Shown here one piece after another: positions 21,932 to 51,921 of a stretch of 64,000 bases of DNA (position 1 is its first letter; each line of letters opens with the position of its first letter). The notes below the pieces were generated by a model. It was not told the origin of the DNA. It was given only the letters and a program-made list of their open reading frames with translations, and ran no database searches. The translations under genes and the position numbers were made by a program. The stretch covers positions 69,468-133,467 of the forward strand of contig DF237145.1 of the NCBI GenBank assembly GCA_000708835.1. Reading direction: 5' to 3'. Source of the stretch: Klebsormidium nitens. Lineage: Eukaryota; Plantae; Klebsormidiophyceae.

Positions 21932-24910
21932 TCAGAACACTTTGCGTCGACTTGCTTGAAGTTTCCAAAACTTGCGGGTCTCATCAAGGTTGTCCAAGAG
22001 CGAATCTATCCCTGTGCATGGTGCCAACGCCGCTAGGAGCTTGAATAAGGGGATGGTCACTTTCTCGCACCAATAGAGCTGCATTCAATTAAGGTGGAGA
22101 TAGAGTAAGTGAAGGTCATCGATAACACTGGTTTGTATGTATGAGCAGCTTGGAGGGGAGTGATTTGACTGGTGAATTGCGGATCAGAAAGGGTTATAGT
22201 CTTCGGTTAACAAGATTTGCCTTTGGCAGGCACCGTATAACAGTTGCTTATGAATGTTTAGGCACCAGTACAAATGAACTCGCTTTTCTATTTTTGGGTT
22301 TGAGAGTATAAAAAGAGACAACCAAGCCGGAGAACTCCGCATCGAGATCGACATGAAAATCCTAGAAATTCGACACATCCAAGTCCATCCATATGAGTCG
22401 TAGTGCGTTACCTGCGATTGGTACAAATCCGCTTCGACAAGCTTCGCGCTGGGGGACTCTTTCATCCCCAAGGCCCGCTCAATGTCGATCTGCAGGGACA
22501 CAGATCTCGAACGGTAAATTCAGAGAAAATCTTGAGTCTCAAAGATTTTGAAAGGGTTTCGGACAAACATTCTGCTCGCAGCGGCAGTTTGAGATATTTG
22601 GAACCGCAATCGAATGAGGTCTCAACAAGCTGCGCCGTAGTCTCTCGATCGACTCGTTAAATCTCTTCAAGATCGGGCTTACCTGGTTCCGAAACTCGGC
22701 GTACAGGCGTGCAACCCAGAACTGCGCCGCCTGCGGTCCCCGGGCTTCGTTGCCGATGTCAGCGCCTGCACGGTGGGCAGAAAGTGACGTCAAACAAGAA
22801 AGAAGAAAAGATCCGTTCTGGTCTCACAATGGAATTCTGATTAGATGCTACCCCGTTCTATCCCTTGTTTTGATCTGTCAATTTTAATCCAGCGAGGAGG
22901 CTGCCAATCAACTTCTCTCAGACGTGCGTTAGGAGGCGAAGCAAAGATGGAGATAAGTCCGCCTCGAAGGATGCGCAGAGGTCTTCAGCGTCAACCACTT
23001 GGAAACGCTTTGATGATGCAGTAAAGCCTATTCCCCTCAGCGCCTGTACAAAGTTTGCAGCACGCTTTCAACGGAATCTGTGGGCAGGAGCCAGAAAATA
23101 TGCGTTGACAGTCTTAGGAAAAACGGAAAAGAAGATCACGCATGTGAAAGCTTACAATATCACGAGCAGGCTCGCTGAAGTTGCGGATTTTAACGATATC
23201 CTTTATCCATCACGCTCAAGCCCTAGGTTCTAAATCCCCTCAACCTCTGAACTTTCATACCTCTGGAATCTCAAACTCAGAAAGGAACCGGCAGAGGAAC
23301 CGTGAGTAAGCAAATGGATCCTACATTTCATGAGCAGGCTCGCCAAGAAGTTGCGGTTCGACCGGTCCCGCCAGTCGACGCCCATCTCCGCCCACCGGCG
23401 CCACTTTTGCAGAAGCGTCCCGTGCCGCGCCATGTCGGTCGCGCCGATGCCTGCCACGTCAGCGGGAATTCAGCATGACGTTATCAAAGATCACGCGCAA
23501 CGCGTGAACTTTACCTGGGGCCGGCTTTAAAGTCGCGTGGAGGTCGCGATCGAAATGTTACCATAAGCTGATGTTTGCGCAGGAGCAAGCGTGCGACCTC
23601 ATCTCGTGCAGCCCTGATTTGAGGGACTTTGGAGGATTATTCCGGAGAGCCATTTTTCACGGCGAAACTGCTTTGATATGAGCCGTGAGTTCTGCTTTCG
23701 AGATTGCGCAGAAAGAAGTAGTGCGCTATAGTAAGTGCGATACAAGTCCTGGCAAGCAACCGTCCCAGGTTTTCGACCAGATTAAGTACATTTACTTACC
23801 GCTTAGAATCAACACGTCCCTCCCAATCGAACGAGCCAATTGCTTTGGCTCTTCACTTTGAGTGCCTTGCGCCTTAGGGGAAGCACCTAGACTGGCGCAA
23901 TCGTCCAACTACGTCATCAAGCAAGGCGTCAAGAGGGAGCGCCGACTCACACTCCGCCACGGTGTCAAGCAGCCTCGCCCGGTCCGATTCGGACAGCTCG
24001 CTCAAGATGTCCGTTTCGGATGCGCTCAGCAGGGTTTCGAGGTTTTGAAAGTGGAGGCGCTCGTTGGTGCTCGTCGGGAAGCGCTTCGCGGCCGGCGCCT
24101 GAATCTCCTTCAGGAAGTCGTTGGTCAGGCCCACGTGGCCCAGGTCGTGACACAAGCCTGACGTCATGGAAGAAGTTAGAGCCGTGGCTTGGAACCGGGG
24201 GGGAGATTTGGCATAAGAAGGAAGGAAGAACATTAGCTTGAGACCTGGTACCACTTGTAAAAAGAAAAGTCGTGGTTCACTTGGGCCAAGTCCTGACACA
24301 GACCTGATCACCCGGATTGGCGGATTCTGAAGGTAACATAAACATAAGGCTTCCGAAATTCAAAGGCATTTATCCACCCACTTGCGATGGGCACTGCGTC
24401 GACCTTGAGCGGCACTTGTGCGCGCATCTGGATGTCGGCTCCAAAGCACGTCCCTACACTCCGAAAGCACGGACCGACTCACCCGCGAGCAACAGCAGAC
24501 CATCCCGAAGTTCTCAGCACTCTAGTTGTCGCCTTAAAACCCTGTGTCAGAAAGCATCCGGAAGCCCAAGCCTTACAAAGTTTTAGCGCGCTTACCCGCG
24601 ATCAGCACGGCCGCGACCTCGAGCGGCTCCAGTTTCGCGCGCACCTCCGGCCAGCCTAGAAACACGCACAGCATCTGGACCACGTTGTACACGTGGCACA
24701 TGTTGTGGTACGGCACGCGGTCGTCGTGCTGCGCGTCCACGTGGCGCGCGAAGCGCTCGAGCAGGCACGTGTCGATCTTCAGCGCGTCCAGCGCGCCCGC
24801 GGCGACCATCAGGCTGACGATGCCAGGGACGAGGTCGCCCCGGGTTAGTGACAGGGCGTCGACGAGGGGGAAACCGAGGGCGGGAGAATCGCCCGAGGCG
24901 CTGGAAATTG
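21932..24910 (-). CDS. Class I (HD-type) cyclic-nucleotide phosphodiesterase domain of the receptor AC-PDE
   Basis: PYHNMCH; AGLCHDLGHVGLTNDFL; TNERLH; CIGATDMARH; LLMK|CADIGNEARG...W...LYAEFRNQ; DLYQSQ (invariant Gln); LYWCEKVTIPLFKLL...NLDETRKFW. The metal-binding H/H/D/D set is present. Confidence 0.9.
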
Positions 24911-27900
24911 CTGCGGTGGCAAGGAAAAAGTTAAGAGAGAAGCTAAGAGAGAAGCGAAAGCCAACCTCCCAATCGAATTGCGGCGATGGACTCGAGTCTC
25001 GTCGAAACTTTCTACAACTCAATTCAAGCAGAACGGGCAAGTTGGACCGGTTGAGAAACTCCTTCTGCAAAGACTACTTACAAAACGAGTTTCAAGCTGG
25101 CACTGAGCTGAGGCAATCTCTTTCGATTCTTTCTGTCAGAAGAGAGCGAACTCCTTCTCTATTCATGCCTTTATCGTCTTTTTCCAGGCGTCTCAATGAT
25201 CGCAGTAGCTTGCTATCGAGGAGAGCCCATCAATGAATCTGGAAGTCCTCTCTTCTAACTTAAGCTTCTTTTGGTCTCCGCTTACCCGTTTCAGGCAGCG
25301 GAGGGGAACCCCCCAGCGTGTGCTTCGGCCCCGTGACGAGGTAAGAGATCATGATACCCTTGCCCTTGATGTGAATAGGCTCTCGCTCCTGGCAGGAAAA
25401 GTCTTCCGCGATCTCGTCCCGGGTCTCCTTGGAGATATTCACACAGCCCAGCACGCCGTTGGTCTCCATGCGGCTGGCAACGTGCGGTCATATCGTGTCA
25501 AGGAGAATTTCACAACCCTTTTCAGAGGACGCGTTAACGGATAATGAATGTGACAGAAGGGTTGCGGTTGCCCGAAAACAGTCCGAGTCTTGGAAAGAAG
25601 AAGTGTCAGGGCATTCCTGAAGCAGCAGACTTAACTGTTTAGCGACAAGCGGCGTGATAAACAGGCCCCATGTGCTTGACATTCAAAGAAGATTGAAAAG
25701 AAGCTTGCTGGGTATCGAGAGCGAGACTTCAGAATCATTCCGACTGCCGAAGCGTCCTTCAGCGTCAATTTCCCCCTCCTAACACAGACATCATATCAAC
25801 AGACCAGGGGGCAAGGGAGTGCTTCGGAGGATGTATTGACTGTGTCGCCCCAAATATCGTAGATGAACTTCCGTGTTCCTGCAGAACATGTAAGGAAAAC
25901 CCTCAGCCCTGCTTGCCAATCGATGAGTCCTTGGAGACGATGTAAACATAAATGCCCGCAATATTGTACTATTCGGACCGAAGACTTTAGAAAGTGGGCG
26001 ACCATGATTGGCGCTTATTCGCCAGGTGCCGGCGTGCAGAAAAGGCACGAGTTCAAGAGAACCAGACCAGCAAAACTCAGCATTCATGCTGGCACGCCGA
26101 GAAAGCCTAAAGTCTCGACAAACATCACCCAATCCAATTCCGGAAGTTCCTTTTCCGCCCCGCCCCATGCTTAAACAACGCACGGGCTTGAGATAAGTGT
26201 CCATCCCGAGTGGTTGCTACACACAAGCAGACTCGTTCATGGTAAATGCTAGGGTGTCTCTCCACCTGTAAGTTCAACAACCACCGGCCCAGTTTTCAAA
26301 ACATGGCGCGCGTCGATGCTGAAGCCAAAGATAAGGGCAAAAGCACGCACTTCTATCACCGTCGCAACCAATCTGATAAGAGCAGAAAGGAAGCACAAGT
26401 TTCCATGACCGAACCCAAATATCACAAGCAACCCCGGACCCGTATATCCACACCAAAGCGCGCGTCATGCTGGACCCCAACATGAAGCAAATCTTTTTTA
26501 CTGTCATCAACGCAAATAACGAGAAAGAAGAAGAGGGTTGTACGTAACCCAACCCGATTATCACCTGTAACCCCTGCCACGACCGGCCCCGTATTTACAC
26601 CGAATCGCGCGTCGATGCTGGACCCCAGCATGAGGTTGATCTGCTTAATGGAGAACGCCAAGTCGAGCGCCATTTGCACCGTCGCGTGCGCGTGGTCTAA
26701 GCGCTCGCGCGGAAGCCCGCACGCGGCCATGTAGCCGTCCCTGTGCAGAGGAGTCTAGTGTTTAGGCTTTTAGGGTTTTAGGGAGATGGACCGTCGCTTG
26801 CGCGTGGTCTAAGCGCTTGCGCGGAAGCCCGCACGCGGCCATGTAGTCGTTCCTGCGCAACACGGTCCGTTTTGCGCGGCGCCTCCGTTTTACGTGGTCG
26901 TTTCCTTTGCGCCGTGTCACAATGAGCGTCTTGATGTGGTGTTACCGTCATATAACATGCGGGCGATCGAAGAAAGGCGGTGTCCTAGGATCACTAAATA
27001 GGCGTGCCCCGTAAACGAAATCTCCTTAATACTAACGCGTTTTAGCGATCCTTCTGAGCTTTGCCTACCGTGAGAAACGCTCTTCTTTCCTTCGACCCCT
27101 TGTCTTTGTCAGCTTCTTGATCCTTCTCAGAACATGCTTTCCTACTCCTTTCTGCTCTTGCTTCCCGCTACTTCTGTTCTTTCACGTTCATTACATCTGG
27201 ATCAATTACCGCTTAAACGATCTGCAGTCCCAGAAGATCTTGATTGACCATGTCTTTCATACGTTGAGAAAGGTCGAGTTGTTGAAAAGTCATCTCGACG
27301 GACTTACCCAATGGTCTTGATTTTCTGCACACGAACAAACGAAGGTAGCGTCAGGAGCCAAATCAGCAGTGACAAGGTGAGGTTTGCAATTCCGCTGATT
27401 GAGATCAAAACCGATACAGCTCGCTGTGACCTATCAGCAACCATTCTTGAATTACCCAGCAATTTACTTTTGTGCTCCCTTGTTAGTCTCAGTTCGGCAA
27501 TGCTGGGAACCCGTTTCAAACAGAAATGAACACCGTTCTATAAGGACCACGAGGAGACTACGGCTCACAAAACTGATGAGCTGTCAATCGCTCGGGACAA
27601 ACCTAATATTCTTACCTCTCCGCCGTGCCGCCCCACGATGCTATCGAACACAGCATGCTGCAAAGGGGCGAGAGGAAATCAGCTCCTTATGCGACGGGCA
27701 CGAGGAGACCGGAAACAGAACCTGAATCATTTGCAGGAGGAGAGCAACAATGTCGAAAGAAACATATGAACGCGCAGAAAGATGGAGACGAAGGGCTGCT
27801 AAAGCTCGCACTCGTCATGTGCATTTCATTTTACTTGCTTTGACAGAACCGGACAGAAGGTATTGCACAGACCAACCAGGGTCCTCACTCCAGACCGCAG

Positions 27901-30900
27901 TTCAAAACGCCCGCCTCAACTCACCCACTTTCAACCAAAGCCAAAAAAAGAAACCGACGCTTCTCGAAAACACCAGTTTGCGACTCACGATCATGGAGAG
28001 CTTCCCGACGAGTTCTTCCGGGCCCATGGTCGCAGACCACCGGGTGAAGTTCTTGATGTCCACAAAGAGGATGCTCGCCCGGTGGAAGCTTTCCGCGATT
28101 GACGGCGCGCTCCACGGGTGCCGCGACTCGCGCAGGCTGGAGAAGACGTCCGTCGCGCTCGGGCCGCGCGTCTGCAGCTGCTCGATGACCTTCGCGGGTA
28201 AGATGTTCAGAAGCAGGTCCTGAAAAACAAAAAGGGTCTGGACCTTTGAGGTCTAGAGTCTATCCCCTTGCTCATTCGTTGTTCCATTGTGAAAGTAGCT
28301 AGTTGCTGGGTGCACGGTGCTGTCATAGAGGGACGGGTGCAGTCGCGCTCGAGCAGGCGTCTGAAGCAGCTTGAGCTTTCGCAGGGCAAACGTTGAGGCG
28401 GGCGTCAAAATACCAACATTTCGTAGTTCGAGGGTCTCCCCTGCCCTCTTCATCACTCATGAAAAGCTATAGCAAGCTTCCACTCAAGACTTCGTCTCCG
28501 GCCGCCTCTCCACATGTGACGTCACGCTCACGTCGGCCTTGCGCTTGCCCTCTGCCAGCTGGCGGTTTGTCTCCTCCATGGACTTGGCGTGCGCCCACCC
28601 CTGCAGGTAGTACCGCACCGCGTACCAGCACGCCGCGGCCGCGCTGCCGCCCACCAGCAGCGCAACTAGAGCGAGGACGTCCTTCCGCTCGTGCCTGCAG
28701 CCAAAAAGTAAGATTCCTTGAGTTCTACGTCGTTATTGGCAGCACGCCGCGGCCACGCTGCCGCCCACCAGCGGCGTAACTAGAGCGAAGACGCAAAACG
28801 AAAGAACAGCTCGAAGACGCAGGTGGACGGCAGTTGCAGCGTTGCACAGCCCCTTTCTAAACGGTAAAGTCGATTGCTCCTCGTCTAGACTAGACTGATT
28901 CGCAAGCTTGAGGAAAATGCTACTTCTCACTAGAAAAGAACACTCTCGATTTAAACGGTCACGCCACTTCTCACAAAGGGGACCGTCCTCTCTCGCATCA
29001 GACGGTCAAGCTACTTCCCGCCACTGGAGGGAGGATCTTGAATTAACGCTAACGCTACTTCTCACCAAGGAGGAAAACTGTCGGATCGGACGGTACCGCT
29101 GTCTTTTACCAAGGGCATATAATCTTGTTTCAGACGGTCACGCTACTTCGCGTCAAAGGGAACGCACTTCTTATCAAGGGGGAAAGATATCGAATCGGAC
29201 GGTAACGCTGTTACTCACCATGGGGGGATGATCTCAAATCGGACGGTCAGCGGCTCAAAATACTTGTGATGGACGTCCGCCCCCACGATCTCAACGGACG
29301 CACGTCCACACTGATCAAAGGAGAGAGAGAGGCGAGACGGGTCGGCCCTGCAAATTGAAAGGACCGTTCTTTTAGAGTAAAAGCAGGGGAAATGGCGGAA
29401 ACAAATTCGCAGAGAAGATATCATTCGCTGAAAACTAGGAGGCCGCTAGGTTGATGTTGCACGATGGTTGCACGAGCATCTTGATGTGGCCTTTTTGTGG
29501 CTCTGTGTTTCTGGTCAGCTTTGCTTGGAGCTAGGTAGAAACAAGAAGGGCTCCAAAAGCTGATTTCTCCAGAAAGCACAGCATCGCGAACGACTCCTTA
29601 CGGCGTTGAAACTCGGATCGTCAGCTGAGCACCTGCAAAGAGCGATACAAGGCTGACCAAAAGAGAAGGCTACCTAAAAGAGAGGTCTAGCATAGAACGC
29701 GCATGCGAAAACAGCTCATCTTTGCCTCCTCAACGAGGGGACTTTTCCTGTAATAGTGGTCAAAAAGTTTAAGGAAATGAGAAAACCTCACAGCAAGCTG
29801 GAAGGGTTTCTAAGGTTGCGCATTGTCACCTCGGGAAAGGTGCCCAGGACTTTTCTTCCCGGTCTCCCGGAACCAGAATCCGGTAGGCGTAAGCGGGATT
29901 GCAACCGGGCAGTTCGTGGTCCACCGGGCGGATGTCTAGTTCTACGAGCTGGAGCCTTCGAACTCTCTGGAGAAAGCGTACCCCGGCACTTTTTCAGGCA
30001 GCAGAAACTCTCCAGCGGAATGGACGGGTACACTGAACGTGAATGTCTGTCGAAGCGTTGAGTCTTGTAGACTACCTCACTGAGAGGAGGTCGCTTCTTC
30101 AAACCCTTCCAGAGAAGGCCGTCAGCGCAGGGGAAACCTCTTTTGAGTGCTTTCCTCGGTACCACAAACATGAATTTCGATGGGTTAAAGTGCTGGACAG
30201 ATGCATCAAGTGGAGGTCGCCTCTTCACTTCTGTTTCGTCGGGAATGTCTCGGCACTCCGTGCGCGTATAGCGGAACGGGCGCAAGCACAAACTCGAGCC
30301 CTGGCAGAGTTTCTGACCGTTGCGTGACGTCAGCAGAGCTTGGACGTCTCACCAGGTCCCCTGCTGGGCTGACTCCGTCTTGGCCCGAGGGCTTGAAACG
30401 GATGCGGCGGCGCGGAAGAGACCAAGAACTGTCGCGGGGGAAGCGAACGGCCACTTCAGTTCCCGAAACTTTCAAAGATGCAGACTCGCACGATTCGGCA
30501 CCAGAAATTTCAAAATTATGCCGAAACGACACCGAGAGCCGTTTGCGGTGCAGGATATTCGCAAAAGCGCAGGGTTAAGCTCAGAGATCTTCCGCCAAAA
30601 ACTCCATCTCCCGCTCGCAGTAGTGCCGAGTCCCTCGATGCGGAAGAGATGCCGAGTCACATAACGGACGGCTTTCCAGATGTCCTCATGCGGGCACCTC
30701 TAATTCAACGGACGCTTTCCATCTCTGTAAAATGGGGTGTCTTTCTGTTTTACGTACAACGAAGCGTCCCACAAAGCCGGTAGAGGTGAATGTCTTTGTC
30801 TGAACATCCCTATCGGAACGCTCTCACCTGAGGAACGTAAGGCCCCCTGGGCGCCCCAGCACCACTGTCCCGTCGCCCAAATGACCGACCGAGTGGACCA

Positions 30901-33900
30901 CCCGGTTGGATAGGTTCTCCCACCGGTCGTGCTGCTTGAGCGTGTTCACCCAAACCCGGCCGTCGTACGCCCCGGCGCCCTCGCCGTTGCAGCCCGCCCA
31001 GATGATCCCCCGTGAGTTGACGCCCTGGGAAAAAGGGGTGTCAATAATGTTAAGAGACGACTTTTTCCACTGGTCGTGCTGCTTGAGCCTATTCACCCAA
31101 ACCCGCCCGTCAAACGCCCCGGCCCTTTCGCCGTTGCAGCCCGCGCAGGTAACGCCTCGGGAGTTGACGCCCTGGAAAATGGGGGTGTGAGTAATAGATC
31201 AAGAAACAATCTTTGTCCCACCGGTCGTGCTGCTTGAGCGTAATCACCCACACCCGGCCGTCAAACATCCCGGCGCCTTCGCCGTTGCAGCCCGCCCAGA
31301 TAACGCCTTGCGGATTGACACCATGGGAGTGAAGGGGCGCGAAAAAGTGATACGACGACGGCTTTGATGCAATCGCGCTTAGTAAGATCATCAAAGTTGG
31401 TCGCCAATGATTCTAAAGTCGCATTCTTAGCCGGCCTAGGTGATGCTTCGAAGATTGAATACCTGAAAGAAGGGCGCATCCACCTTCGATACATTCGAGC
31501 AAGTAGGCTCCTACGTTCGTGCTCTGAGACCGAAGCATCTTTTTAAACCACTTTCAACAAAGGCACGACTTCGTCGAGCACGGATCATTCGCCAATCATA
31601 CAATTTCACCGCACCAGCCGTTGAAATCAACCGACTTTCCATGGTAGTAAAGCCCCATTTTTCGCTCGGTTCAAATCCAGTCGCCTTACCAGTGACCGGA
31701 CGTCGTTCCCCGGGAGGCCGTCCGCAGGCGTAAACGTCCGAACCACTGCGCCGCCGTCGATGACCGCGACGCCCATTTGGGTGCCCGCCCACAGCCGTCC
31801 GATGTCGTCGTTCACCAGCGCGTGCACGTCCGGGTCAGGCTACAGCGGATTCGGAGGCTTCCAAATTCAGACGCGTTGAAGGCTTGTACGGACGTTTGTG
31901 AAGAGTGTTCTGGACTCCTTTCAGAGGTGTGTACTGGACGCTCTTTCTGATCATTGTGCCGGACGCCTTTCAACGTGAATAAGGGACTCTCAGAACGGGC
32001 ACCGGGTGGTTTGCACCGTGTAGGAGACGTAAAGTTGTTGACGGGAGGAACTGAGACTGAGATCTAGGATGTTTGACGCCGGTGACAGATCTTCACGGTT
32101 TCGTTATCAAACGCCTTCCTTTGCGAAGACATTCCCTCCTCGTTGGTGATGAGCAGACACGACTTGAAGTGGTGATGAGCTTGAGTTGGGGAGGTAGCAG
32201 GTCATCGAGGCTTTTTGGGCGATGTGGCTTTTTGGGCGGTGTGACATGAAGGCTTTTCAGCCGCCTTCCCGATGTGGCGCGGAAGTCTGGATTCGCCTTC
32301 AAGGCAATCAATGCATCCAAGGAGCGCAGTCCCCTTGTTTGCTTTCGGTTCGTTTTCTATTTGCCGAGAGGGAGAAGCTCCTCCAGTATCTGAGAACATG
32401 CCGATGTCACCTCGCGGCGCAATCTGCTGACGTCTGAATACGCAGCACTCACCAGCCCGTCTGCGACGGTGATATTCCGGACGGCCGTCGTACCGTCCGG
32501 CTGCGGACGGAGCTGGGAGATTCCGCTGTCCGTGCCCACCCAAATGCAGCCGGCGCGCTTGTCTAAGTAAGAGAACAGATGCCAGACGTCAACTCAACGT
32601 CGTTGCTTCTCCTTGACCAAAGCAGTGCTCACCAATCACAATCTCCGCGCTGCTAGCCTACTGAGCATCACACGACACTTGCACTGAATCTGAAGCTGAC
32701 GGACTAATTCCAAACCAAGGCGCTATCAGGTAACTCTATGCTTCCTGAATCACTGCCCACCGCAAAACCTGGTGTCACGAGGAATATTTTTGATCTGTGC
32801 CTTCAATCTAGGGTTCCTGACATGGATCCCAAAGTTCCGTGCGTTTTTCGTACGGGACGGTGGAGCGATGTTCAGAAGCGGGTTTGAGGAAACCCAAGGA
32901 GGATTTTAAGAAATTCTGTAAGTTCACCTTCATGCACAGCCTGCACGATGTTGTTGACCAGCCCCTGTTCCGTCGTGAACCGCGTCGCGGCGCGGCCGTC
33001 CCAGGCGACTACACCGGTCTTGGTGCCGAACCTTAACAAGTAACACACGGAAGCTTTAGTCCTGGGCTGGTTGGATCTTCCCTCTGCGCGCTACCTGCTT
33101 CCCTAATAGTCCCGAGAAGCTTGAAAACACAAATTAGATGTGGTCGCTTGCTGAAAACGAGTCTACGTGGTTTTTTGAATTCCGGTCCAGCTAAAATGCA
33201 CGAAAACCCTCCTGAGAATTCTGTCTTTATCGAGGCCGCTTTCCGAAGAGGAGACTGTTGGAAAGGCGGCCGACAACTGGATTCGAAAAGGAGCGCTCGA
33301 ATTGCGCGCACAAGGGAGAAAGCCCTCACCATACGACGCCGTTCGATGCCGCACAGATGCTCCGGACGGCGTGCCCCCTGATGGCGTCCGAATCTAGAGC
33401 GAGGAACTTCCCGTCCTTCACGGAATAGTGGGCGGCCCCTTGGTCGGTTCCAACCCAGACGGTGCCCTGGAAAAGTTGCGTTTCATGAGTATCTGAGATC
33501 GAGATTCCTTATAGAGCGGATTATGTCTCCAGCCTGCCAAAGAGCAGATTGGTTGGAAATGAAAAAATTGCCTCAGAATTCATTGACAAGCAGTACTTTA
33601 GTGGCTTGTCAGTCAAGACAAGCAAGAAACAGACTGGTTCATGCCCCATTTGAACGTCCTACGCGCACTATTAACGTCAGACCTTCGAAAAGGAAAGCGG
33701 AACCGTCATACGCTCAGCTCGATATTCATAAAAGCAAGACGGCAAAAGGGGAACTCTCAATGGATCAGCACGTATGCACATGAGGCGACTCGCCGGTCCT
33801 ATAAAAGCAATTACCAGGGCTCTTGACATCAAATTTTTAAGATGTGGGCAACCCAATCCACTTACACACTTATATGCTCAGATTGTTGTCCCGAAATGGC

Positions 33901-36900
33901 AGACCGCTGAACAGATTAGCCCACATATTTACCTGAGGTGACTCGGTGATACAGTACACAACCTCTCGGGCACTTAACACAAGATTTTGAAAGGTCTTGT
34001 CCATCTAGGTAGTCAACCAACACCATTATCTGCTCAATAGGCTGTGCATAGATTGCCCAAAACGCCGATGAATCAGCCCACAGACATACCTGAGGTGACT
34101 CGGTGATACAATAAACCAGTCTCCCGGGCACTTCCTGGCCCATACGAAGTACCCGGGAGATCGCCCCGTCCGGACGCACGACGACGACGCCGAACGTCCG
34201 GGCGGCCAACCACGTGGCGTCGTTTCTGCTGTCCACGTGGACCAACGCGGGGAAAGAACTGTCCGCGAGCCGGAGCGTCCAACTTTCGTACGGGTTCCAT
34301 GAGAAGAAGCCGCACTCAGTGATCGCAGTGCCTGACAAAAGATGAAAGTGGGTTATGGGCTGGTTTGCGTTAACCAGAGGTGCTTGAGCGGCAATCTCCA
34401 GTGCCCCAACCAATCTCAAGAGAAACGTTTGGTCAACCGCGAAGGTGGACAAACCTGGTTTTCGAGTTGCATACGTTCCTCTGCGGATTATATGGGTACA
34501 ATCGATCTGAGCGACTTCGCTTGAGAGTGCTGATAAGCGTAACCTTGGGACGTGCCAACAGTGCGCAGCTCGTGCATCGCGTAACCAAAGGTGGCATACC
34601 AATTCCAGACCACGAATCCATTCACAAGAGCTCGTGGAAGCTCGCTGTTCATGGGGGATCGAGGCAGCCGTTTGATTGAACATGGAAAAAAACGGATCTA
34701 TTAGAAGGATGCGGTCGCACTTATGCAGCAGGTGGAACATCGGAAAACTCGCGGCATCAAAGTGATCAAAGTGTCAAACTTGCACCCGTTTGCCCTGCGA
34801 TCGGCTTAGGTCAGCCGAGCTAGACATCAACGCTCTTACCGAAGAAGAGCCGTCCTGTAGAGCTGCCCACGATGCTGCTGACCTCTCGCAGCGCTTCCGG
34901 CGACTCCTTGAGCCGGACGAAGCCCAGATCGTCGCCGGCAAAGAATGACACGCCTGCGGACAAGAAGTTACGTGCAAGCATGAGCACAGTGGTGTTCTAC
35001 TTCAGATTGTTGGGCCATTGGCGGAGATTGACGTGACGTCACACTGGCAGTCTGGAACGACAATTGAAGCGGAGAATACTGAGACACATTCTTCAGAGTG
35101 CGGATGCGCGCCACCCGTAGAAGTATCAGGAGTGACAAGCTGAAGAATCAGAAACTGTAGAGGCGAGGTCAATTACCAGAGTATGCCTGAAGGGCACGAC
35201 GGCGACGCCCAATCTTTCTATCCTTGCAGTGTCACGATTAGTCTGTTAACTTCCAGAATTGCCGCAGGCGTCTGCTGGTTGATCGACTTGCGACGAGGGG
35301 ACTGCCGCGAACGTATACACTCGATTCAAACGGAGATGCCAAACCCCACGCGAACGGGTCCGGGTCCTTGATACTCACCTGACTCGCTGCCGGCCCACAG
35401 GACCCCGTCCCTGTGCCGCGTCAGTGTGAAAACCCGCTCGCTCCTCCGCTTCCCCATGTCAAACCACTGCACCTTGCCACGTGGCAAGGCGTCCGCCCCG
35501 ATGTCAATACGCCCCACGCCACAACTCGTGGCGAGCCAGAGTGTGGTTTCGCCGGTGTGAAAATCTTCTACGGTGTCGAAGTCCAGAACCTCGACGTCGG
35601 ACATGCCTTGAGACGCGCCCAACTGACGTATGCTGCCGTCAGCGGCAATCCTGCGCCACGTGGCGTTGGCTCATCATCAGTCCTTGATGACGTGAAGTCA
35701 AGGCAGAGCTATCAATCCTCTCAACAAGTTCGTTAGCAGTTTTCAACTCCCCAGAACGATGTCAAAAGAAAAACGTACGGACTCTGGGGAATCCTCCTGA
35801 CACCATGCCTTGAACTGGTATATCGCCACTGGAAAAAGCTTTCTATTGGACTCCTTCAAGTCAAACACATTGAACGGTAGTTGGGAATAAAACGATCGGA
35901 GAGCCGACTTTGCGCCTGTCTTGTCAAATATTCCTCGGACGTGAGAAAACTCCTCGTTGGGGGGCCAAGCCGCAAAACAGTGTCTTAGCCGGAGTGGGCT
36001 GCCCTTTCGATGGAGATCGCGCTCGAAACGAGATGAAGAGCTTTCTGTAGCAGATTCCTAGCGCGCACTAGATTGCGCTTCGAAATGACAGGGAAAACGG
36101 AAAAGCGCTCACCAAGAGAAGCCGCTCCTGTGCCCCACCCACGTGTTGCCCGCCGTGTCCGCTTTGATCGCCGTACACGTGGACGGTCGTAAGCCGTCCG
36201 ATGAGGAGAAGGTCCGCCACGTGCCCAGCAGTGGGTTGTGACACGCAACCCCCTTCTGCAAGGGTCAAACGAGTCAATGAAATTTGTCTTCATTTCGAGT
36301 CGAATTTCTTCGGAGCACACGGTACAGAATAGCGTGTGCTTCTCGAAGGCCTTATCTGAGGATTTTCCACAGCCACCTACTCAAGACGTGGAGCGAAACA
36401 CAAAATCTGCATATTCAATAACTCAGGGTGCTTCAGAACCGTCGGCTGTTATGCCAGATGCTCGGCAAAAGCGTACCGCAACCTCTGAAAACAAAGAATA
36501 TTCAAAGGCACCTCAAATCAGCAGGTCGCGGATCTGCTTTGCGTTCATGTCAGTACGGTGGAGGGGACAAGGAAGACTCGAAAGCCCTAGAAAAGCTTAC
36601 TTACCTCAGTGGCGAACCAGACCGTTCCGTCCGTCGGACGTACCGACACTGCCTCGACGTTGCTGGACGGAAGACCGTCGTTGACTGTGAAGTGCTGCAC
36701 AGGCGATGGCGACAGGGCTTGTAACATAGTGAAAACGCGAGAAGATGTGCGGACGTTGATGATGACAATGCTTACTAAGAGCGCGTCGGCGGGCCGTTGA
36801 AGACACACAACTTCGGCGACAAGAGCAGTCACGACACACATTGGGCGGCCGAGGCAGGTTTGAAGACGGGATATAACCGTTGATCCCCCCAGGGGTCTGG

Positions 36901-39229
36901 TGCACAAAAGTATCTGAAAGCTTAGCCTACGCCATCTTTCAAACGCGCGTTCCTGGGAATGACAAAAATCGGGCCTAAGAAGGGCGTCAGAAACCGCGCC
37001 CTTCCCCGGCGGTCCCTGTGCAGTACTTCCTGCTTTGGTGTCGCCAATGAATTGCTCACGTGGTGGCCTCATTCGGCGACTAAGACCACGACAAGAGGGC
37101 CATCTGGTCGCCGCGCCGTTGCGTATCCCGGGACGTTCGGTTAGGAGTGGAGAGTCTAGAGAGACCTACCTGGAAGATTGGCGACATTCGGCTGCCGTCT
37201 GCGTTCTTTGCGAAGAGCAAGCTCTTGGAAACCTTGACGGCGCCGAGATCCGTTGCGAGCCAGAGAGCGTCCGGGTCACGTGGGCTGCAGGAAGGTCTCA
37301 TTAAGCACGTCAGCCATCCATGCAGATTTATCTGCACGATTTAGATGAGTGTTTAATAAGGTGCCTGAATGACAAAGAGATGGCGTAGCACAACGGATGG
37401 TTTCTGCAGCATTTCCTCAGGATTGAGGCGGGACGAACCTGTGAGAGGCGGAATTAATGTGAAGCTTCTGATTTAAGAAGGCTTCAGTATAAGAGGAGAC
37501 AGCTTAGACAACCGCACAGCTTGTTTGAGTAGCAGACGCATTGGAGCGCCAAGGGTATTAATCGTCGCCATCTCTCTTGCTTTGCTGTTTGGAGTGCTCC
37601 ATCCGCAGCCCAAATTCTTTTCTATGTAGGCTCTATCCATACTCGGGACTATTTCATCGTCGTTCCCTTTTCCCCCGTTCCACGCGTTCCAAGTCGTTTC
37701 TCAGTTCCGCTGATCCTCGTTACGTCCTCATATGATCGAATGAAGAGTTTTGGGCGCCCGACGCTATGCTTTTAAGAAGAGAAGGCGAGACGGCCGCTAG
37801 CAGTCACGGCCCCTGAGAACCTTTTGTAGGTTTGCTTCTCATTCCGTCTCTAGTTGCGTGTCCGTTCAGGCTCCCGCAGAATGACGGAACAAGTAGGACG
37901 GATCACGAAGACCGGAAAATAGCGGGCGATCCAGCTGCTCACCTGAGCTGGAGATCGTTCACGCGACTGAAAGCGGGGAGGAACGCCTCGCTGGAGCTTC
38001 CGTCGAAGACGGCCAGCCCTCCGTCTCGACTGCACAGATTCGACGGGCACGGGAACGTCTGGTAAATTACCAGGAGTGATTGCAAGCCAGGACTCCGAGA
38101 GTGCTTGATCTGGCAGGACAGGTATGAACTAGATGATCCACAAAGCCATATTCCTTTGAAGAATTTTTGTCCCCTAGCTTTTGAAACTCAATATAGCCAT
38201 CGAGAGACACTGTTCTGCACCTGTGATTGGCGTGGATAGATATCGAGGACCACGTTCCACAAGTCGCCCACAAGGAAAGGTTTGAGTTGACTGACGATCA
38301 TTCCATAGAATGAGTACAGACAGTTGTTGCCGGTGAGTGCTGGATCATCCCTAAAAGGTGGGTATGTACAACTTGCTGCCGGAAAGTCTGCGTGTTGTTA
38401 AGGAAGAGGACACCGACGAAGCGGGTAGTTCAACTCACCTGCCAACCCAGAGCCGTTCCTGGCCGTCGATTCGCAGCACGTTCACCCGGTTGTGCGGTAA
38501 CCCCTGCGCTGTGCCAACGTCACTCCACTCCCCGACCCGCCAAGAGCACTCGGGGGTGTCGTTTTCCCCGAGCAACATCCTAACTAGATCGGCCCCCCCG
38601 AGAGCAAGTCGGGAATGCAGAGACGTGAGGCCGGGGTGGGCGATGGAGGCCTTCGTTCGACGTCCCTTGGAAGGAAGCGGACATGGGTTAAGCTGGGCTA
38701 GAATGGGTTAAGGTGGGAGTGGGGGTTTGACAGCGGGACAACGGTTGATTGGTGAGAGATTCTGGTATAAAGAAAAGGCTCCCATCAAAAAGGCAATTTT
38801 GCAGCATGCGATTCAATGCTTTTCCCTCGCAAGTACGTCTTTGATCATTCGCAGGTTTGCACCAATTCAATCCTGGTGCCATAAGCTGCTAGCACAGGGT
38901 AAAGATTTGTGGGAGCCGAGTCAAGGAGACTGCGTTAGCGTGATTTTGGACCAAAGTCACTAATGGGTTCACGACCTGGTGAGGACCTCGTTCCGAAAAG
39001 CTAGTCAAGGGTCCGACCAAACGGTCATTCAGAAGTCCCTGAAATCCTCAAGCCTTGCTACGTCATCACTTTCAGCAGCGTATTCACCTCCAAACATGCG
39101 CGTCTCAGAAGCAGAAGGAGCATTTGAAGAACTCACTTCCCAGGCTGCTGCCGACACTGTTGGCTCTATCGCCGTCGCATGGGCGACGCGCGGTGCTATC
39201 AATCCCGCAGCCGCCAATGCGGCGGCCAT
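21932..39229 (-). CDS. Single-pass receptor adenylyl cyclase-phosphodiesterase: signal peptide, Reg_prop-type beta-propeller repeats, Y_Y_Y-like domain, TM, class III cyclase, class I PDE
   Basis: About 30 exons, most joined in frame by manual splicing; one or two sensor-region junctions are unresolved. The first exon MAAALAAAGLIAPRVAHA (39229-39137) ends at a GAA|gtgagt donor. The last exon 22078-21932 ends at TGA. Domain evidence is in the four sub-features below. Confidence 0.85.
25286..28219 (-). CDS. Class III adenylyl cyclase catalytic domain of the receptor AC-PDE
   Basis: DLLLNILP...ASILFVDIKNFT (metal Asp 1); HAVFDSIVGRHGGE|KIKTIG|DGYMAACGLP (ATP-specifying Lys, metal Asp 2); ARFGVNTGPVVAGVTG|TRKFIYDIWGDTVN|VASRMETNG (ATP-specifying Asp, catalytic Asn and Arg); IHIKGKG. 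Confidence 0.92.
25482..25834 (-). other. Putative U12-type (minor spliceosome) intron with variant termini (AC...AC), inside the cyclase NxxSR motif
   Basis: Minus strand reads GTC AAT|ACATCCTCC...TTCTCCTTGAC-ACGATATGACCGCAC|GTT GCC AGC CGC ATG. The 5' end matches RTATCCTT at 6 of 8 positions. The branch site TCCTTGAC has its A 16 nt from a CAC 3' end. I found no GT-AG solution that restores VNVASRME. Confidence 0.65.
26260..26860 (-). repeat. Echo copies of both ends of cyclase exon 26740-26565
   Basis: An acceptor-side copy lies at 26800-26855, offset 112 bp. Donor-side degenerate copies lie at ~26430-26490 and ~26262-26325. Confidence 0.8.
26761..26783 (+). repeat. Short telomere-like tract (TTTAGGC TTTTAGGG TTTTAGGG) at a duplication junction
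   Basis: Directly visible, but only ~2.5 units. Confidence 0.4.
28532..29950 (-). CDS. Y_Y_Y-like domain, transmembrane helix and signalling helix of the receptor AC-PDE
   Basis: Exons give ELDIRPVDHELPGCNPAYAYRIL and VEIVGADVHHKYFEPLTVRFEIIPPW|W, matching the I-x-PPW end typical of Y_Y_Y domains. The TM segment VLALVALLVGGSAAAACWYAV (28694-28532) is followed by SMEETNRQLAEGKRKAD. Confidence 0.65.
28620..29240 (-). repeat. Echo of the TM exon 5' part (28740-28795) and a ~45-bp unit x6-7 array derived from the Y_Y_Y exon donor region (28940-29240)
   Basis: cagcacgccgcggcc(g/a)cgctgccgcccaccagc occurs twice. gacggt.acgcta/ctgt.acttctcaccaagggg-type units recur up to the true donor at 29218. 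Confidence 0.7.
30340..38665 (-). CDS. Extracellular beta-propeller repeats of the bacterial two-component-regulator (Reg_prop) type; part of the receptor AC-PDE
   Basis: At least 11 blades of the GL-x-x-N-x-V...D-x-x-G-x-LW-x-GT type, including GLPHNRVNVLRIDGQERLWVGS, GLPSSNVEAVSVRPTDGTVWFATE, GLRPSTCTAIKADTAGNTWVGH, VFTLTRHRDGVLWAGSESG, GTVWVGTDQG, GCIWVGTDSG, GLPDPDVHALVNDDIGRLWAGTQMG and GLPGNDVRSLGVNSRGIIWAG. Confidence 0.85.
30920..31330 (-). repeat. Three copies (offsets 147 and 151 bp) of the acceptor plus first ~105 nt of propeller exon 31024-30838
   Basis: GGCGTCAAC...GGCTGCAACGGCGA...CTCAAGCAGCACGACC starts at 31024, 31171 and 31322. Confidence 0.9.
33930..34130 (-). repeat. Duplicated exon end plus donor (ITESPQ|gt) in the receptor AC-PDE gene
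   Basis: acctgaggtgactcggtgataca occurs at ~33930 and ~34088. Confidence 0.8.
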
Positions 39230-42147
39230 AAAAATGGAAGAGAGGATTCGTCCTGCCCAAATTTGAATCAGGGTCAAAGTCGAAGCTCCTGCCGAAGTGC
39301 CCCGTTGACTATCAACCGACCCGGAAAACGAGCCCGGTTTGCCGCCATGCAGTCCTAAAGAGGGGAGTGAGAACTTTGGGAAGCTTGACAGATTGCCCCT
39401 GACGTCGCTGGTAGTGGTGCTTGTGAGAGCGACAAGTCTAGTGCAGAGGACACGAAGAAGTGAAGCGGGCGACGACTTGATGGCCGCTTGAGGCAAGAAT
39501 GGATCACTGGACCTCTCATTTCCAATTCGGAAGGAGCAAGTACAAGAAGAACTATAACCAGCACTGCCAGCTTGCTGTGATAGAGGGGTAATAGTGTGAG
39601 TGGATAGCATCCCGTTATCACCCAAAAGGCAACGGATATAGTTTTGTTGTCCGTAGAAGTATTTCTCTTCTCCGGTATCCACGTGAATGCTCCCCCCATA
39701 TAAGATGCCCATTCCCCCGCGACGCGCCCATTCTGCTGGTCTTTGCCGCCGCTTGCGCATCTGATCTTGCAGGGGCACGCCAATGAAGTTTCGCCCTGAT
39801 TTGAGCCCTCCCCTTCGGCTCCAAAAGCTCCTCCCCTCAGCACAACATGTCCGGGTGCTGTCAATTCTTCTGCAAAGATTGGTCTTTGTTCCCCCCGGGC
39901 CAACCGGCCTCCATAACGGGGGGCCCAAACCCCTCCCTGTGATGCCCCCCCCGGAGCTGCACTCGCGGCAGACACCGCTTCTTATAGAGGCGGAGCACGC
40001 AACAATGCCGGCCGGCCATAAAGCAAGAACAAGAATCTGGGAGTAGGCCATAGACTATCTGTGGTGATGTAAGTAGCCGGCCCAACCCCCCTCCTCCAAC
40101 TTGGACACATTGGAAGGTGCTCCCCTATGATGCACTCTTGAAGGGCAGGTGTTGCTTGTAGGGTCTTCACCCTCTGCATGGAAAAGCGGGGCGGGACTCA
40201 AATCAGAAGCCAAAAAGATAAAGGCCAAGAACTCCTGATTTCCATTATTACCTGGTGTACCTGAAGTACGTAAGCATAGCAACATAAAGCAACAATTTTC
40301 GAAGAGCTACGCCTGCAGTGAACATCATTTTGCCCAATCTGGAGTGGGCAATGAGCACATTGGAGAAACATTCTGCTCGTCAAGCCAGAGGGGCAAAATT
40401 GGTCCATAACTTGTTGTCAGCTTTGTCCTTTTGGGCTGGTGAAAAGGTGGTATGCTTCTGTGTGAAAACAGGATGTAGTAATCTACTACCTGCACCTCAC
40501 CCCGTCATCCTTTTCTCAAGGGGCGTCTGGGGCTGAGCTGTTTTCCATTTAGCAGCATTTATTTCCAGCTTGACACCGGACATTTTGCAAGGCTGTCTCC
40601 GCTGCTTTCATTGAATCGCCTATTTGAAACACCAGGTTACTATTTCAGCTGCCAGCCGGCATAAGAATTCTTGAGCTCTAGTTTTACATGCAACTGTCAT
40701 CGAACAGGATGCCATTGAGTGCTGATTGCTTTAGACCTACTTACCTGAGGCAGGAGGCCCGGTGATCCCTCCAAAGAAGCAGAACTTCTGTGTCCCAGGT
40801 TATGAACAGATTTGGCTGGGCAGTTTAGTTCAGGGGCTTGGAGTGTTCAGTGCAATGCAAGCGGGAGAACCTTCTGAAGTTGGGAAAGAGGTACGTTTTC
40901 CATCTGCCATTGCCTTTGGTGCTAAGCAAAGTGCAAGCTGGAAAGATCTACAAGTCTGAATCAGGCGCCAACCAATCAAATACACCTACCGTAGTAGCTA
41001 CATCTTTAATCTGCAGCAGCTAAGTATCTGTCCAACACAGCCCTGTAAACCTGCAATGATGAGAGCTTGCCAGTTGATAAGTTGGCCAGTCGCTCGCTCA
41101 GAGCAGACTGCAGCGCGGCGGGCGGCCGCCCGCCGGGCGCCCGCACAGGTACTTCAAATCCTCTCCGTACAATCTGCGGTTGACCGATGCCGTCAAATGA
41201 TGCATGCGGCACAGAACCTACCGGTATGAAGGGCTTCCACCTCAGCATCCCGCAGATTTGACCGATGTTTTCGGACTCACACGTATATAAGGGCAGTGGT
41301 GCTAGCAAAAATGCTGTTGGATAAGTTAAAGCAAATCCGCTGCAAATTGCAATCCACCTAATACAACTGAAATCACAGCAACCGTTTGCTGCTGGAACGG
41401 TATACTCATTCCATATTCCACGACACCTACATAAGCGGTGGGCGGTAGGCTGACCCGGGGTGGGTGTGTGCTGTTGAGTAACCGAGCGCCGTACAGCAGT
41501 TGAACAGAGACAGGATCTTGGCCGTTGGACTTCATCGGACGGTGCTGAAAGCCATGCTCAGAAGGAGTCTTGAAGGATTAAGCAATTAGCAGATTCAGCA
41601 CAGTTACTCGTTCTATGCTCCCGAGTCCCGGTCACTGGACAGTTCCGAAATGACCGGGCGGCCGGAAGGAGCTAAGCAAGGAGTTAAAGGAGTACGGAGA
41701 AAAGTTGTGATTGGCCGCGCGACTCCTTTGCATCTTCTCAAAACCAACTTGGCTCTCTTCTCAAGCCAGCTCTGATGAGAAAGTCATCCAATTCGAGCGC
41801 TTCCTGTTGGCTGAGTTGGTCCTTTTTAGGCAAGCAACTTGCACATCGAAAGTGCTCCCAAAGCGCTTCCTGAAAAATGGTGAATGCAGCAAGCGGATCA
41901 ATCGTTTTCTTTTCTTCTTTGGTGCTCATCATGTAATCAGCTGTAACAACCAGTCTCAGACTATGATCGAGCAGAGAGACGAGGTTTGAGAATGTCGCAA
42001 AAAGGACAAGTTCGAAGCTCCGGTTTGCTGGGGTTTTACTTTACATCATAGCGCCATCGCTTACAGCAATTGGGGTGAAGTTCCGGGGTGCAGTCTTAGC
42101 TGGTGGTCCTTTGGGTGGCCATCACTGCTTAGCGGCATGCACCTCAA

Positions 42148-50600: not shown

Positions 50601-51921
50601 GAGGATCCCGATGCAGTACTTGCGGACTACGTCGGCCGACTCCGCCGCTTATCCCCCTCTTGAGTTTCTGCCGGCGTCGAATGTGGTCCGGTTGCGGCTA
50701 GACCTAAATACCAAGCAGACGACGATCGAAACGCTCGACAAGCGGAACGGCGAGTTTGCCGCGATCCACCCGGAGCGGGTTGGCTACAGTGCTCGGTTCA
50801 TTTACACCGCGTCATGTCAGGTAAGCGCCTCTTCATTTTGCCTAAGGACATCGGATGCAAACCCCCGGTTGACGGTTCGGGTTTTGATTGGCTTGCGGCA
50901 GAATTGCCGGCTGAACGGTTTTCAGGCTTTCAGAGCTTGCAACAAAGCTCTCAAGGAACCCAAAAAAACCTAAGACTGATCTTTAGAGCAGCTTAGTGCG
51001 GGCCTTGAAAGGACAGCAGGCGTGCGAATGTATTAGCTTCTTGCCCATCGTACGGGTGGAAAAGTTGTAATTGGGTTACCGCTCCCAGGCTTTGAACCGT
51101 ACTTTCTATGCAACTTGCTGAAGCTGGTTCAGCTTCTTCCAACCTGCTGCCCACGTCACGGAGACGTCACGGAGACGTCACGGAGCTTTACGGGTCTCTT
51201 GCATCGTTTCCCAAAGTGCTCATTCTAGTTGTCCGCCCACAGGTTCCGGAAGGGGGCGCGCTTTTCGACGCGCTCAGAAAGGTCGACACCAGCGGGAAGA
51301 CCCCCCCGCAAATCTGGGGGGAGTCGCCGACCGTGTATGTGGGGGAGCCCGTCTTCGTGCCACGTGGCGGGCAAAGAGTGGGCGCGCCGTTTGAAGAAGA
51401 TGCGGGCTGGGTGCTCATTCTACTATACGATACTAGATCGTTGACGACGGACCTTGCTGTGTTTGACGCCAAGGTAAGGCAGTCCGTTAATTTGAGCGCC
51501 TTTGATGGAATTATACGCCGATGCTACCAATCTCGTAGTTGCGTTGCGTTTCGCAAGTCAAATGGTTCCCTCCCTTTACCTGACGTCCAACTTGTTTTAT
51601 GTTTTTCAGTGCTTCACTGCTGCGCTTCCAAAGCGGAAATGGAGAAAAAGTTTCTTGGAAAGTACGTCGACCAATTTTGCCGTCTACCTTTGATAACGTA
51701 GTGAGCGAATTCTGATGAGCAGGGCCAGTAACCGGCCTACAATATGATTTCGGCGTTTTGAAGTTTTGTAAAAACGGCAGCTGGCTGATCCGACTTTGCA
51801 GGACATAACGAAAGGACCCGTCGCCCGGTTGAGGTGCCGCCACAACATGGCGTACGGTCTGCACGGCACGTGGGCCGCCCGGGAAGACTTGAACCGGGGT
51901 AGAGGTGCCTTTTCCGGGTGA
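47620..51921 (+). CDS. Carotenoid cleavage dioxygenase (RPE65 family), cyanobacterial ACO-like; no own start exon or transit peptide found
   Basis: Exons 47620-47748 (VEGHVPTDLDGVLYRN), 48105-48351 (GPA...NPVDGDG...KNAAN), 48702-48910 (TNVVFWGGRLLALWEAGLPHELDPETLET...FAAHP), 49385-49581 (LLHDF), ~49949-50148 (LHHANAFE), ~50586-50820, 51243-51473 (GEPVFVP...EDAGW) and 51801-51921 (YGLHG...TGA). All four iron-ligating His residues are present. Confidence 0.9.

Follow-up and report, generated by a model that had tools for sequence, protein, structure and literature searches.

To our knowledge, few eukaryotic proteins synthesise a cyclic nucleotide and also degrade it, and only CAPE (COMBINED AC with PDE), which joins an adenylyl cyclase (AC) to a phosphodiesterase (PDE), has been characterised biochemically. 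CAPE occurs in Marchantia polymorpha and other streptophytes with motile sperm (PMC5159850, PMC8115329, PMC11032487); its PDE is N-terminal, about four transmembrane (TM) segments lie in the middle of the protein, and its AC is C-terminal (PMC5159850, PMC8115329). Both activities have been shown for the Marchantia protein, MpCAPE, which is thought to control cyclic AMP (cAMP) tightly (PMC5159850, PMC8115329, PMC11032487). The cyclases that the CAPE papers report from Klebsormidium, Mesostigma and chlorophytes all lack a PDE. A second combination, the guanylyl cyclase-PDE (GC/PDE) protein Sro991_g228730 of the diatom Seminavis robusta, has a short cytosolic N-terminus, an extracellular stretch and a membrane region, followed by cytosolic cyclase and PDE domains (PMC4726125, PMC8027222). 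Two TM segments have been reported for it, its substrate and product are predicted to be GTP and cGMP, and it has been proposed to act as the receptor of a ligand, a pheromone, while keeping the messenger tightly controlled (PMC4726125, PMC8027222). The diatom cyclase is reported to retain most guanine-binding residues (PMC4726125), and the authors of that work stated that the combination was known from diatoms alone (PMC4726125, PMC8027222). The locus described here lies on the minus strand of a 64,000-nucleotide stretch of contig DF237145.1 (the window), between positions 39229 and 21932. With a probability of about 0.72, it is a single gene with one main mRNA, encoding a membrane protein of ~1,415 residues, in which a propeller sensor, a TM helix, an ATP-type cyclase and a tethered PDE follow one another, and which would make and remove cAMP locally.

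Compared with CAPE, this protein has its catalytic domains in the opposite order, AC then PDE rather than PDE then AC, as an initial annotation of the locus had pointed out (PMC5159850, PMC8115329). It also places a single TM helix ahead of both domains, where CAPE has about four TM segments between them, and carries a large ectodomain, which CAPE lacks. No protein of CAPE length was found among the 11 matches retrieved from 1.84 billion representative proteins with exon 25, the first PDE exon, and nothing in these matches suggests a close relation to CAPE. The diatom GC/PDE resembles the present protein in that an extracellular part and a membrane span precede cytosolic cyclase and PDE domains in a single chain. 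The two differ in the cyclase, which has a Lys/Asp pair of adenylyl type here and guanine-type residues there, and in the ectodomain, which is a propeller here, none being reported for the diatom protein; the diatom lineage, moreover, has few introns. Those of the exon 25 matches for which a source was looked up came from non-diatom lineages. The architecture, initially put forward as unrecognised, is thus in its general form already described, since the diatom protein has the same succession of extracellular part, membrane, cyclase and PDE; the novelty lies in the lineage, in the ATP-type cyclase and in an ectodomain built of propellers of bacterial type.

More distant parallels exist for each half of the molecule. 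One TM helix, a helical transducer and a homodimeric class III domain (the dimer being predicted here) are shared with animal membrane guanylyl cyclases, trypanosome receptor adenylyl cyclases and mycobacterial Rv1625c/Cya (class IIIa), but those single-pass cyclases have no PDE and their ectodomains are of other folds. Some bacterial GGDEF-EAL proteins, which are c-di-GMP cyclases and phosphodiesterases, carry Reg_prop/Y_Y_Y sensors (PMC6637768, PMC11372557). They resemble the present protein in combining a sensor, a membrane span, and a synthase and hydrolase of the same second messenger in one chain, although the catalytic folds and the messenger are unrelated. A literature search found no link between Reg_prop sensors and eukaryotic cyclases.

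The stretch is intron-rich eukaryotic DNA with a G+C content of about 52%. From 39229 to 21932 on the minus strand, stop-free pieces match first Reg_prop-like, then Guanylate_cyc and then PDEase_I profiles, and the gene rebuilt from them has 30 exons and 1,415 codons with no internal stop. Its product runs from a hydrophobic N-terminus through 14 Reg_prop-type blades, a Y_Y_Y-like segment and one TM helix to a class III AC and a class I PDE; exon matches, motifs and the spliced translation place the domains listed in the initial annotation there, in frame, with Y_Y_Y as a putative assignment. The borders of the cyclase and PDE exons were set by eye on the sequence and then compared with Logan contigs from four RNA-labelled runs, which come from different studies and bear two organism labels.

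Fusion of AC and PDE is the main product of the locus. The cyclase exon that ends at 25286 (reading CCTGAAACGG before the donor GTAAGC) is spliced to the PDE exon that starts at 24910, where the acceptor is preceded by a pyrimidine-rich tract and CAG; these are the exact sites foreseen from the DNA. The AC-PDE intron between them (24911..25285, minus strand) is 375 nucleotides (nt) long, with GT..AG ends in phase 1. Its removal continues the frame ..PPLPET-A-ISSASGD.. into the PDE, and its retention stops the frame at TAA 25260-25262. RNA-derived contigs contain the joint 25286/24910 in all four runs, at depths of 390, 75, 16 and 54. The sole listed contig with an unspliced junction has a depth of 3.7, in run X1, where the spliced form is ~100 times deeper. 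A single 1,034-nt contig from run X20 covers exon 24 together with PDE exons 25, 26 and 27, and a contig from run X10 likewise joins exons 24 and 25.

The remainder of the catalytic half is similarly backed by RNA. All 11 introns between exons 19 and 30 fit the contigs, eight of them as listed joints at the predicted sites, and the three around exons 20 and 21 are supported by loose contig ends and by depth calculations: in each of the four runs, the loose end at 27657 gives the sequence of the exon 19 terminus, and the depth share per bin of the same contig fits 42 nt for exon 20 and 17-18 nt for exon 21. Further upstream, all sampled words of ectodomain exon 7 are present in 19 RNA-labelled runs, X10 among them, which is consistent with ectodomain and catalytic exons residing in a single transcript.

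A diverged relative allows the whole gene to be compared. It was found through an exon 25 match (70% identity) in the protein library and lies on JGI contig Ga0590114_0000905, a 116-kb metagenome contig, where the overlapping loci L005, L004 and L001 span the entire orthologue. Conserved blocks are colinear between the two, all 30 exons are kept with matching phases throughout, exon length is equal in 25 of the 30, and the frame of the relative is open for 1,416 codons. When projected onto the relative, 29 of 30 exons sit directly on an AG acceptor and a GT donor, the exceptions being one GC donor and an AT..AC minor intron; its exon 25, which is 6 nt shorter, was placed by eye. The relative also has the AC-PDE intron in the same in-frame phase 1, but with a length of 1.4 kb (1,400 versus 375 nt) and a different linker. 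Taken with the spliced joint and the selection on both enzymes described below, this argues for the single sensor-TM-AC-PDE polypeptide that had been proposed.

Synonymous divergence (dS) between the window and the relative is about 1, and the ratio of non-synonymous to synonymous rates (dN/dS) varies widely along the protein. It is lowest in the cyclase (0.026, with 96% identity), followed by the propellers (0.087, 81%), the TM segment and adjoining helix (0.15, 76%), the PDE (0.21, 75%), the AC-PDE linker (0.35, 54%) and the Y_Y_Y-like segment (0.40, 66%). These values point to purifying selection on both the cyclase and the PDE, and all catalytic motifs of the two domains are intact in both species. 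A separate observation concerns L003 3750-4617, on a metagenome contig of 7 kb belonging to the same series of samples, which contains a frameshifted copy of exon 25 with part of the preceding intron, at 76% DNA identity with the relative and without cyclase or other PDE exons; it has the appearance of a pseudo-fragment left by duplication.

Wider searches returned individual domains. The 11 matches of exon 25 comprise three exon-sized fragments (99, 70 and 66% identity) and otherwise ordinary PDEs; a full-length AC-PDE protein is absent among them, exon 25 being the least conserved part of the PDE. A metagenome scan with PDE exon patterns gave no matches. The corresponding scan with cyclase exon 22 gave 14 intronless cyclases of 33-47% identity, probably bacterial, and no PDE or propeller match was found beside any of these 14. 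In the ESM Atlas, exons 25 and 19 retrieved only generic PDE and cyclase fragment clusters.

The cyclase domain occupies residues 863-1085 and the PDE about residues 1131-1415, with a soluble linker of about 40 residues between them. Pieces of the cyclase match Guanylate_cyc (PF00211, cut-off 21.9 bits) colinearly at positions 4-40, 59-120, 115-134 and 132-182 of 183, exon 22 scoring 48.7 bits and exon 24 33.7 bits. Pieces of the PDE match PDEase_I (PF00233, cut-off 24.8 bits), again colinearly, at positions 1-39, 26-109, 110-156 and 156-184 of 238, with exon 26 best at 51.7 bits. The best PDB matches of exon 22 are the C1 domains of AC5 and AC8, mycobacterial cyclases and a rhodopsin-guanylyl cyclase, and that of exon 26 is PDE10A (E 7e-8 over 68 residues). 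By these comparisons, the cyclase is closest to class IIIa enzymes.

On the minus strand, the cyclase begins in exon 19 (27989..28219), where a transducer-like motif, DLLLNILPAKVIEQL, is followed by FVDIKNF, which bears the first metal-binding Asp; this exon supplies Guanylate_cyc positions 4-40 and is 99% identical to the relative. Exon 20 (27616..27657; 42 nt, 100% identity) and exon 21 (27308..27324), a 17-nt micro-exon that codes for KIKTIG, with the adenine-specifying Lys, and has AG/GT ends in both species, lead to exon 22 (26565..26740), which forms the core of the cyclase, contains the second Asp for metal binding (GDGYM) and is connected to the next exon by the RNA joint 26565/25878. 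Exon 23 (25835..25878) encodes YDIWGDTVN, with the adenine-specifying Asp and the catalytic Asn, and exon 24 (25286..25481) contains VASRME, where the catalytic Arg lies, as well as the last part of the cyclase (Guanylate_cyc positions 132-182) and the linker; both exons have RNA joints on either side. The PDE opens in exon 25 (24596..24910) with its N-terminal helices and YHNMCH (PDEase_I positions 1-39) and proceeds through exon 26 (23951..24157; CHDLGH and NERLH), exon 27 (23325..23450; ATDMARH, positions 110-156), exon 28 (22683..22765; CADIGN, positions 156-184) and exon 29 (22412..22489; 77% identity with the relative), which ends in the invariant Gln (..YQSQ), all of them with RNA joints. 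In exon 30 (21932..22078), whose joint 22412/22078 is found in four runs, the PDE is completed (LYWCEKVTIPLF) and translation stops at TGA 21932-21934.

All the catalytic motifs first read from the DNA were recovered in the spliced protein, namely FVDIKNF, KIKTIGDGYM and YDIWGDTVNVASRME in the cyclase and YHNMCH, CHDLGH, ATDMARH, CADIGN and QSQLYW in the PDE. FVDIKNF, IGDGYM, KIKTIG, YDIWG and NVASR are identical in the relative, and the five PDE motifs are conserved in both species. Residues were assigned on the basis of established structure-function studies of PDE4 and of the C1/C2 domains of mammalian ACs. The cyclase has the two metal-binding Asp residues, the Lys/Asp pair typical of ATP use and the Asn/Arg pair, with the six catalytic residues on one chain, and the PDE has all metal-binding residues and the invariant Gln. 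From the Lys/Asp pair, the substrate of the cyclase is predicted to be ATP, and the enzyme should act as a homodimer. In the relative, five copies of the start of exon 19 occur (L001 3813-5046).

Ahead of both catalytic domains lies a single strong TM segment, residues 814-836, the only place where a 19-residue window has a Kyte-Doolittle mean of at least 1.8, and the one membrane span originally proposed is borne out. It is encoded at 28610-28678 in exon 18 (28532..28694; 76% identity with the relative), followed by a charged helix ending KRKAD. In our reading, this post-TM charged helix, which ends in DLLLNILPAKVIEQL, resembles the transducer element of membrane cyclases. Residues 1123-1143, considered as a second TM helix, were ruled out: they form the first PDE helix, with charged residues in the relative.

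The ectodomain closely resembles a bacterial sensor. A profile of nine ectodomain exons, each of approximately one blade, matches PDB entries 4A2L (E 6.5e-24), 3V9F (3.6e-20) and 3OTT (8e-9), all ectodomains of Bacteroides hybrid two-component sensors, and no other entry below E 0.1. Of the 14 blades, 12 were located by a search for W-x-G-T-like motifs and two by eye in the translation; together they would form two seven-bladed propellers. Single exons match the Reg_prop family of Pfam several times, each below threshold at 12-20 bits. The periplasmic Bacteroides sensor domains (4A2L/4A2M, 3V9F and 3OTT) likewise have Reg_prop propellers of 14 blades and a TM helix, with a Y_Y_Y domain where the present protein has a Y_Y_Y-like segment. 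Bacteroides hybrid two-component systems use such sensors to bind oligosaccharides. Their output, in contrast to the cyclase and PDE found here, is a histidine kinase, a receiver and a DNA-binding domain, and their genes are intronless, whereas here nearly each blade has its own exon.

For exons 1-18, borders were derived from comparison with the relative, one in-frame GT..AG solution being clearly best for each pair of blocks. Exon 1 (39137..39229, minus strand, as for all that follow) contains the candidate start ATG at 39229 and the hydrophobic N-terminus MAAALAAAGLIAPRVAHA, with a GTGAGT donor placed as in the relative. The signal peptide of the initial annotation is retained in part, in that the hydrophobic N-terminus is present but can equally be read as a signal anchor, and the start is uncertain. 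Exon 2 (38439..38665; 83% identity with the relative, same length, AG/GT ends, Reg_prop 15.9 bits) ends in the first blade motif, LWVG. Single blades are encoded by exon 3 (37943..38029; 89% identity, length and phase equal) and by exons 4 (37170..37284), 5 (36605..36694) and 6 (36113..36255), which are conserved with AG/GT ends in both species. Two blades lie in exon 7 (35379..35650; conserved, Reg_prop 17.8 bits), one in exon 8 (34840..34953; 86%) and two in exon 9 (34090..34331; 88%), the latter two exons being equal in length and phase to those of the relative. Exons 10 (33330..33466; 80%, a Reg_prop piece), 11 (32928..33031; 91%), 12 (32453..32562; 75%) and 13 (31690..31839; 88%, Reg_prop 20.2 bits) add one blade each, and exon 14 (30828..31024; 95%) provides the last two.

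The Y_Y_Y-like segment comprises ~115 residues before the membrane, contains NPAYAYRI..W and is split over three exons. It starts in exon 15 (30353..30428), an extra 76-nt exon that was recovered through a short conserved block and has AG/GT ends and phases 2 in and 0 out in both species. It continues in exon 16 (29830..29966; 67% identity with the relative, same length), which carries NPAYAYRI, and exon 17 (29219..29347; 78%, same length), in which the ectodomain ends (..FEIIPPW). Queried singly, exons 16 and 17 gave no Pfam match and exon 16 no PDB match. The propeller part of the ectodomain as first described is therefore strongly supported by the match to 4A2L, and its Y_Y_Y part is assigned by the AYAYRI motif and its position.

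Several features of the DNA around these exons were also observed. A 341-codon stop-free frame (39032-40054, minus strand) continues upstream from exon 1; the upstream ATG at 40051 was ruled out as the start, there being no conservation with the relative upstream of about 39274. At the start of exon 14 there are three tandem copies of 147 nt, of which the middle one is in frame with the real exon, and the relative is single-copy at this point. Use of an alternative exon 14 acceptor at 31171, located in a 147-nt copy, would lengthen the protein by 49 residues without a change of frame. These copies belong to a wider set of partial copies of exon ends, each with a splice acceptor or donor, in the introns next to the exons (30915-31359, 26787-26859, 26263-26336, 28740-28793 and 33915-33959).

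Assembled in this way, the protein would be a dimeric receptor, either of type I or signal-anchored. If the Bacteroides sensors are a guide, a ligand, possibly an oligosaccharide, may bind the paired ectodomains and cause their membrane-proximal ends to move. This movement would pass via the TM and transducer helices to alter cAMP synthesis, and the tethered PDE would hydrolyse cAMP near its source, keeping the signal local and short. Both ligand gating and local, self-terminating cAMP pulses are suggested by the order of the domains.

The intron between exons 23 and 24 (25482..25834, minus strand) is an unusual element of this gene. It splits the N-x-x-S-R motif of the cyclase, exon 23 ending ..GDTVN and exon 24 beginning VASRME.., and has AC..AC ends. 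Introns of U12 type have the 5' site /RTATCCTY, a TCCTTRAY branch motif at a distance of 10-20 nt from the 3' end, and either AT-AC or GT-AG termini. In the relative, the intron at the same place, with /ATATCCTCC at the 5' site, TTCCTTGAC at the branch motif and AT..AC ends, has all three features. In the window, the 5' site is /ACATCCTCC, with C at position +2, the branch motif TCCTTGAC is the same and lies 16 nt before the 3' end, and the 3' end is AC, giving non-standard termini. The joint 25835/25481 is nonetheless unambiguous in three runs, making this a clean natural case of a putative minor intron that has lost the canonical +2 base and is still spliced. If the intron is retained, the frame ends a few codons in, with loss of the catalytic Arg and the entire PDE. 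X20, the oldest run (2012), has a depth of 54 on exon 24 and the PDE exons and about 2 on exon 22, and its main contig ends within this intron at 25670; the pattern could reflect 3' bias or a transcript start inside the intron. Micro-exons of 17 nt and AC..AC introns are feature types that gene predictors often miss, and such hard-to-predict features might explain why a fusion of this kind could be missing from annotations.

Several points weigh against the single receptor-enzyme proposed here. The AC..AC intron is retained at least as often as it is removed, with retained and spliced depths of 212 and 160, 83 and 33, and 15.8 and 12.3, and in X20 it is seen in retained form only. Much of the steady-state RNA may consequently encode a truncated protein with neither active cyclase nor PDE, and poor removal of the intron probably limits the amount of full-length enzyme. 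The model for exons 1-18, unlike that for the RNA-backed exons 19-30, is built on conservation and splice-site logic, and the start codon is uncertain, the relative having GTG where the window has the candidate ATG at 39229. The Y_Y_Y-like label derives from a motif and a position, without confirmation by a hidden Markov model on the separate exons. Constraint on the PDE, finally, is weaker than that on the cyclase.

Among other explanations, the most direct is that there are two neighbouring genes, a receptor cyclase ending at TAA 25260 and a separate PDE gene, with the fusion as minor read-through. The unspliced cyclase frame does stop eight codons past 25286, and the unspliced contig from X1, at its low depth of 3.7, shows that such RNA exists; in X20, moreover, the depth of exon 24 and the PDE exons exceeds that of exon 22 about 20-fold. 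The test for separate genes fails, however, because the spliced joint is present in all four runs and is much deeper than the unspliced form in X1, where it dominates. Intron depth is only 1-6% of exon depth, and PDE exon 25 opens at the acceptor and has no in-frame ATG before the middle of the first helix. The relative, despite the 1.4-kb length of its intron and its different linker, keeps the same in-frame phase 1. The X20 pattern, for its part, fits a 3'-biased library, because this run holds just 0.17 of the exon 7 words. Two genes at this locus are accordingly very improbable, and the RNA is in line with the fusion that the initial annotation had set against this outcome.

Accepting one fused protein still leaves the relation between its two activities to be considered. 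The PDE might be part of a reciprocal switch instead of a constant brake, the state of the sensor setting net synthesis or net hydrolysis as in many bacterial GGDEF-EAL proteins. The domain logic equals that of these bifunctional c-di-GMP enzymes, the AC-PDE linker is short (about 40 residues), and conformational coupling is plausible between two domains that are both normally dimeric. That same linker is nevertheless the least conserved cytosolic part of the protein (54% identity, dN/dS 0.35), which argues against a precise coupling element, and no GAF, PAS or cNMP-binding domain lies between or after the catalytic domains; a switch of this type seems unlikely. Alternatively, one catalytic domain may not serve cAMP turnover at all, the PDE either hydrolysing cGMP, as a form of cross-talk, or being mainly a nucleotide-binding regulatory module. 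Its substrate choice is not readable from the motifs, its non-synonymous rate is ~8 times that of the cyclase, and the diatom counterparts are predicted to act on cGMP (PMC4726125). All its metal-binding and catalytic residues are, on the other hand, conserved in both species, its dN/dS of 0.21 still signifies purifying selection, and the characterised precedent, CAPE, has AC and cAMP-PDE activities (PMC5159850), all of which makes a role outside cAMP turnover improbable.

The reading of the locus as a receptor that makes and removes cAMP can be carried further, to a third, independent origin of a cyclase-PDE fusion, in an alga of the green lineage, where a bacterial-type, glycan-sensing double propeller drives a bifunctional cAMP enzyme whose active amount is gated post-transcriptionally by the degenerate AC..AC intron. 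We offer this extended scenario tentatively, as one that may well not hold in all its parts. If the host is a streptophyte alga, the gene bears on the history of CAPE, as early-diverging green algae figure in the CAPE papers only with cyclases that lack a PDE. With a structurally understood sensor fold, one TM helix and two enzymes in a row, the protein is a tractable system for the conversion of an extracellular signal into bounded cAMP, and it could supply parts for engineered receptors.

Two neighbouring regions of the window deserve mention. Head-to-head with the cyclase-PDE gene, at 44626-47287 and 48657-51698 on the plus strand, is a gene with two pieces that match cNMP_binding, each at E about 1e-5, and after them pieces of an RPE65 carotenoid oxygenase that may belong to it; it is possible that a candidate cAMP reader here adjoins the gene for the predicted maker and breaker of cAMP. 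Further along, at 55959-56303 and 57415-57735 on the minus strand, exons of plant-type leucine-rich repeats, in keeping with a genome of the green lineage, match LRR_1, LRR_4 and LRR_8.

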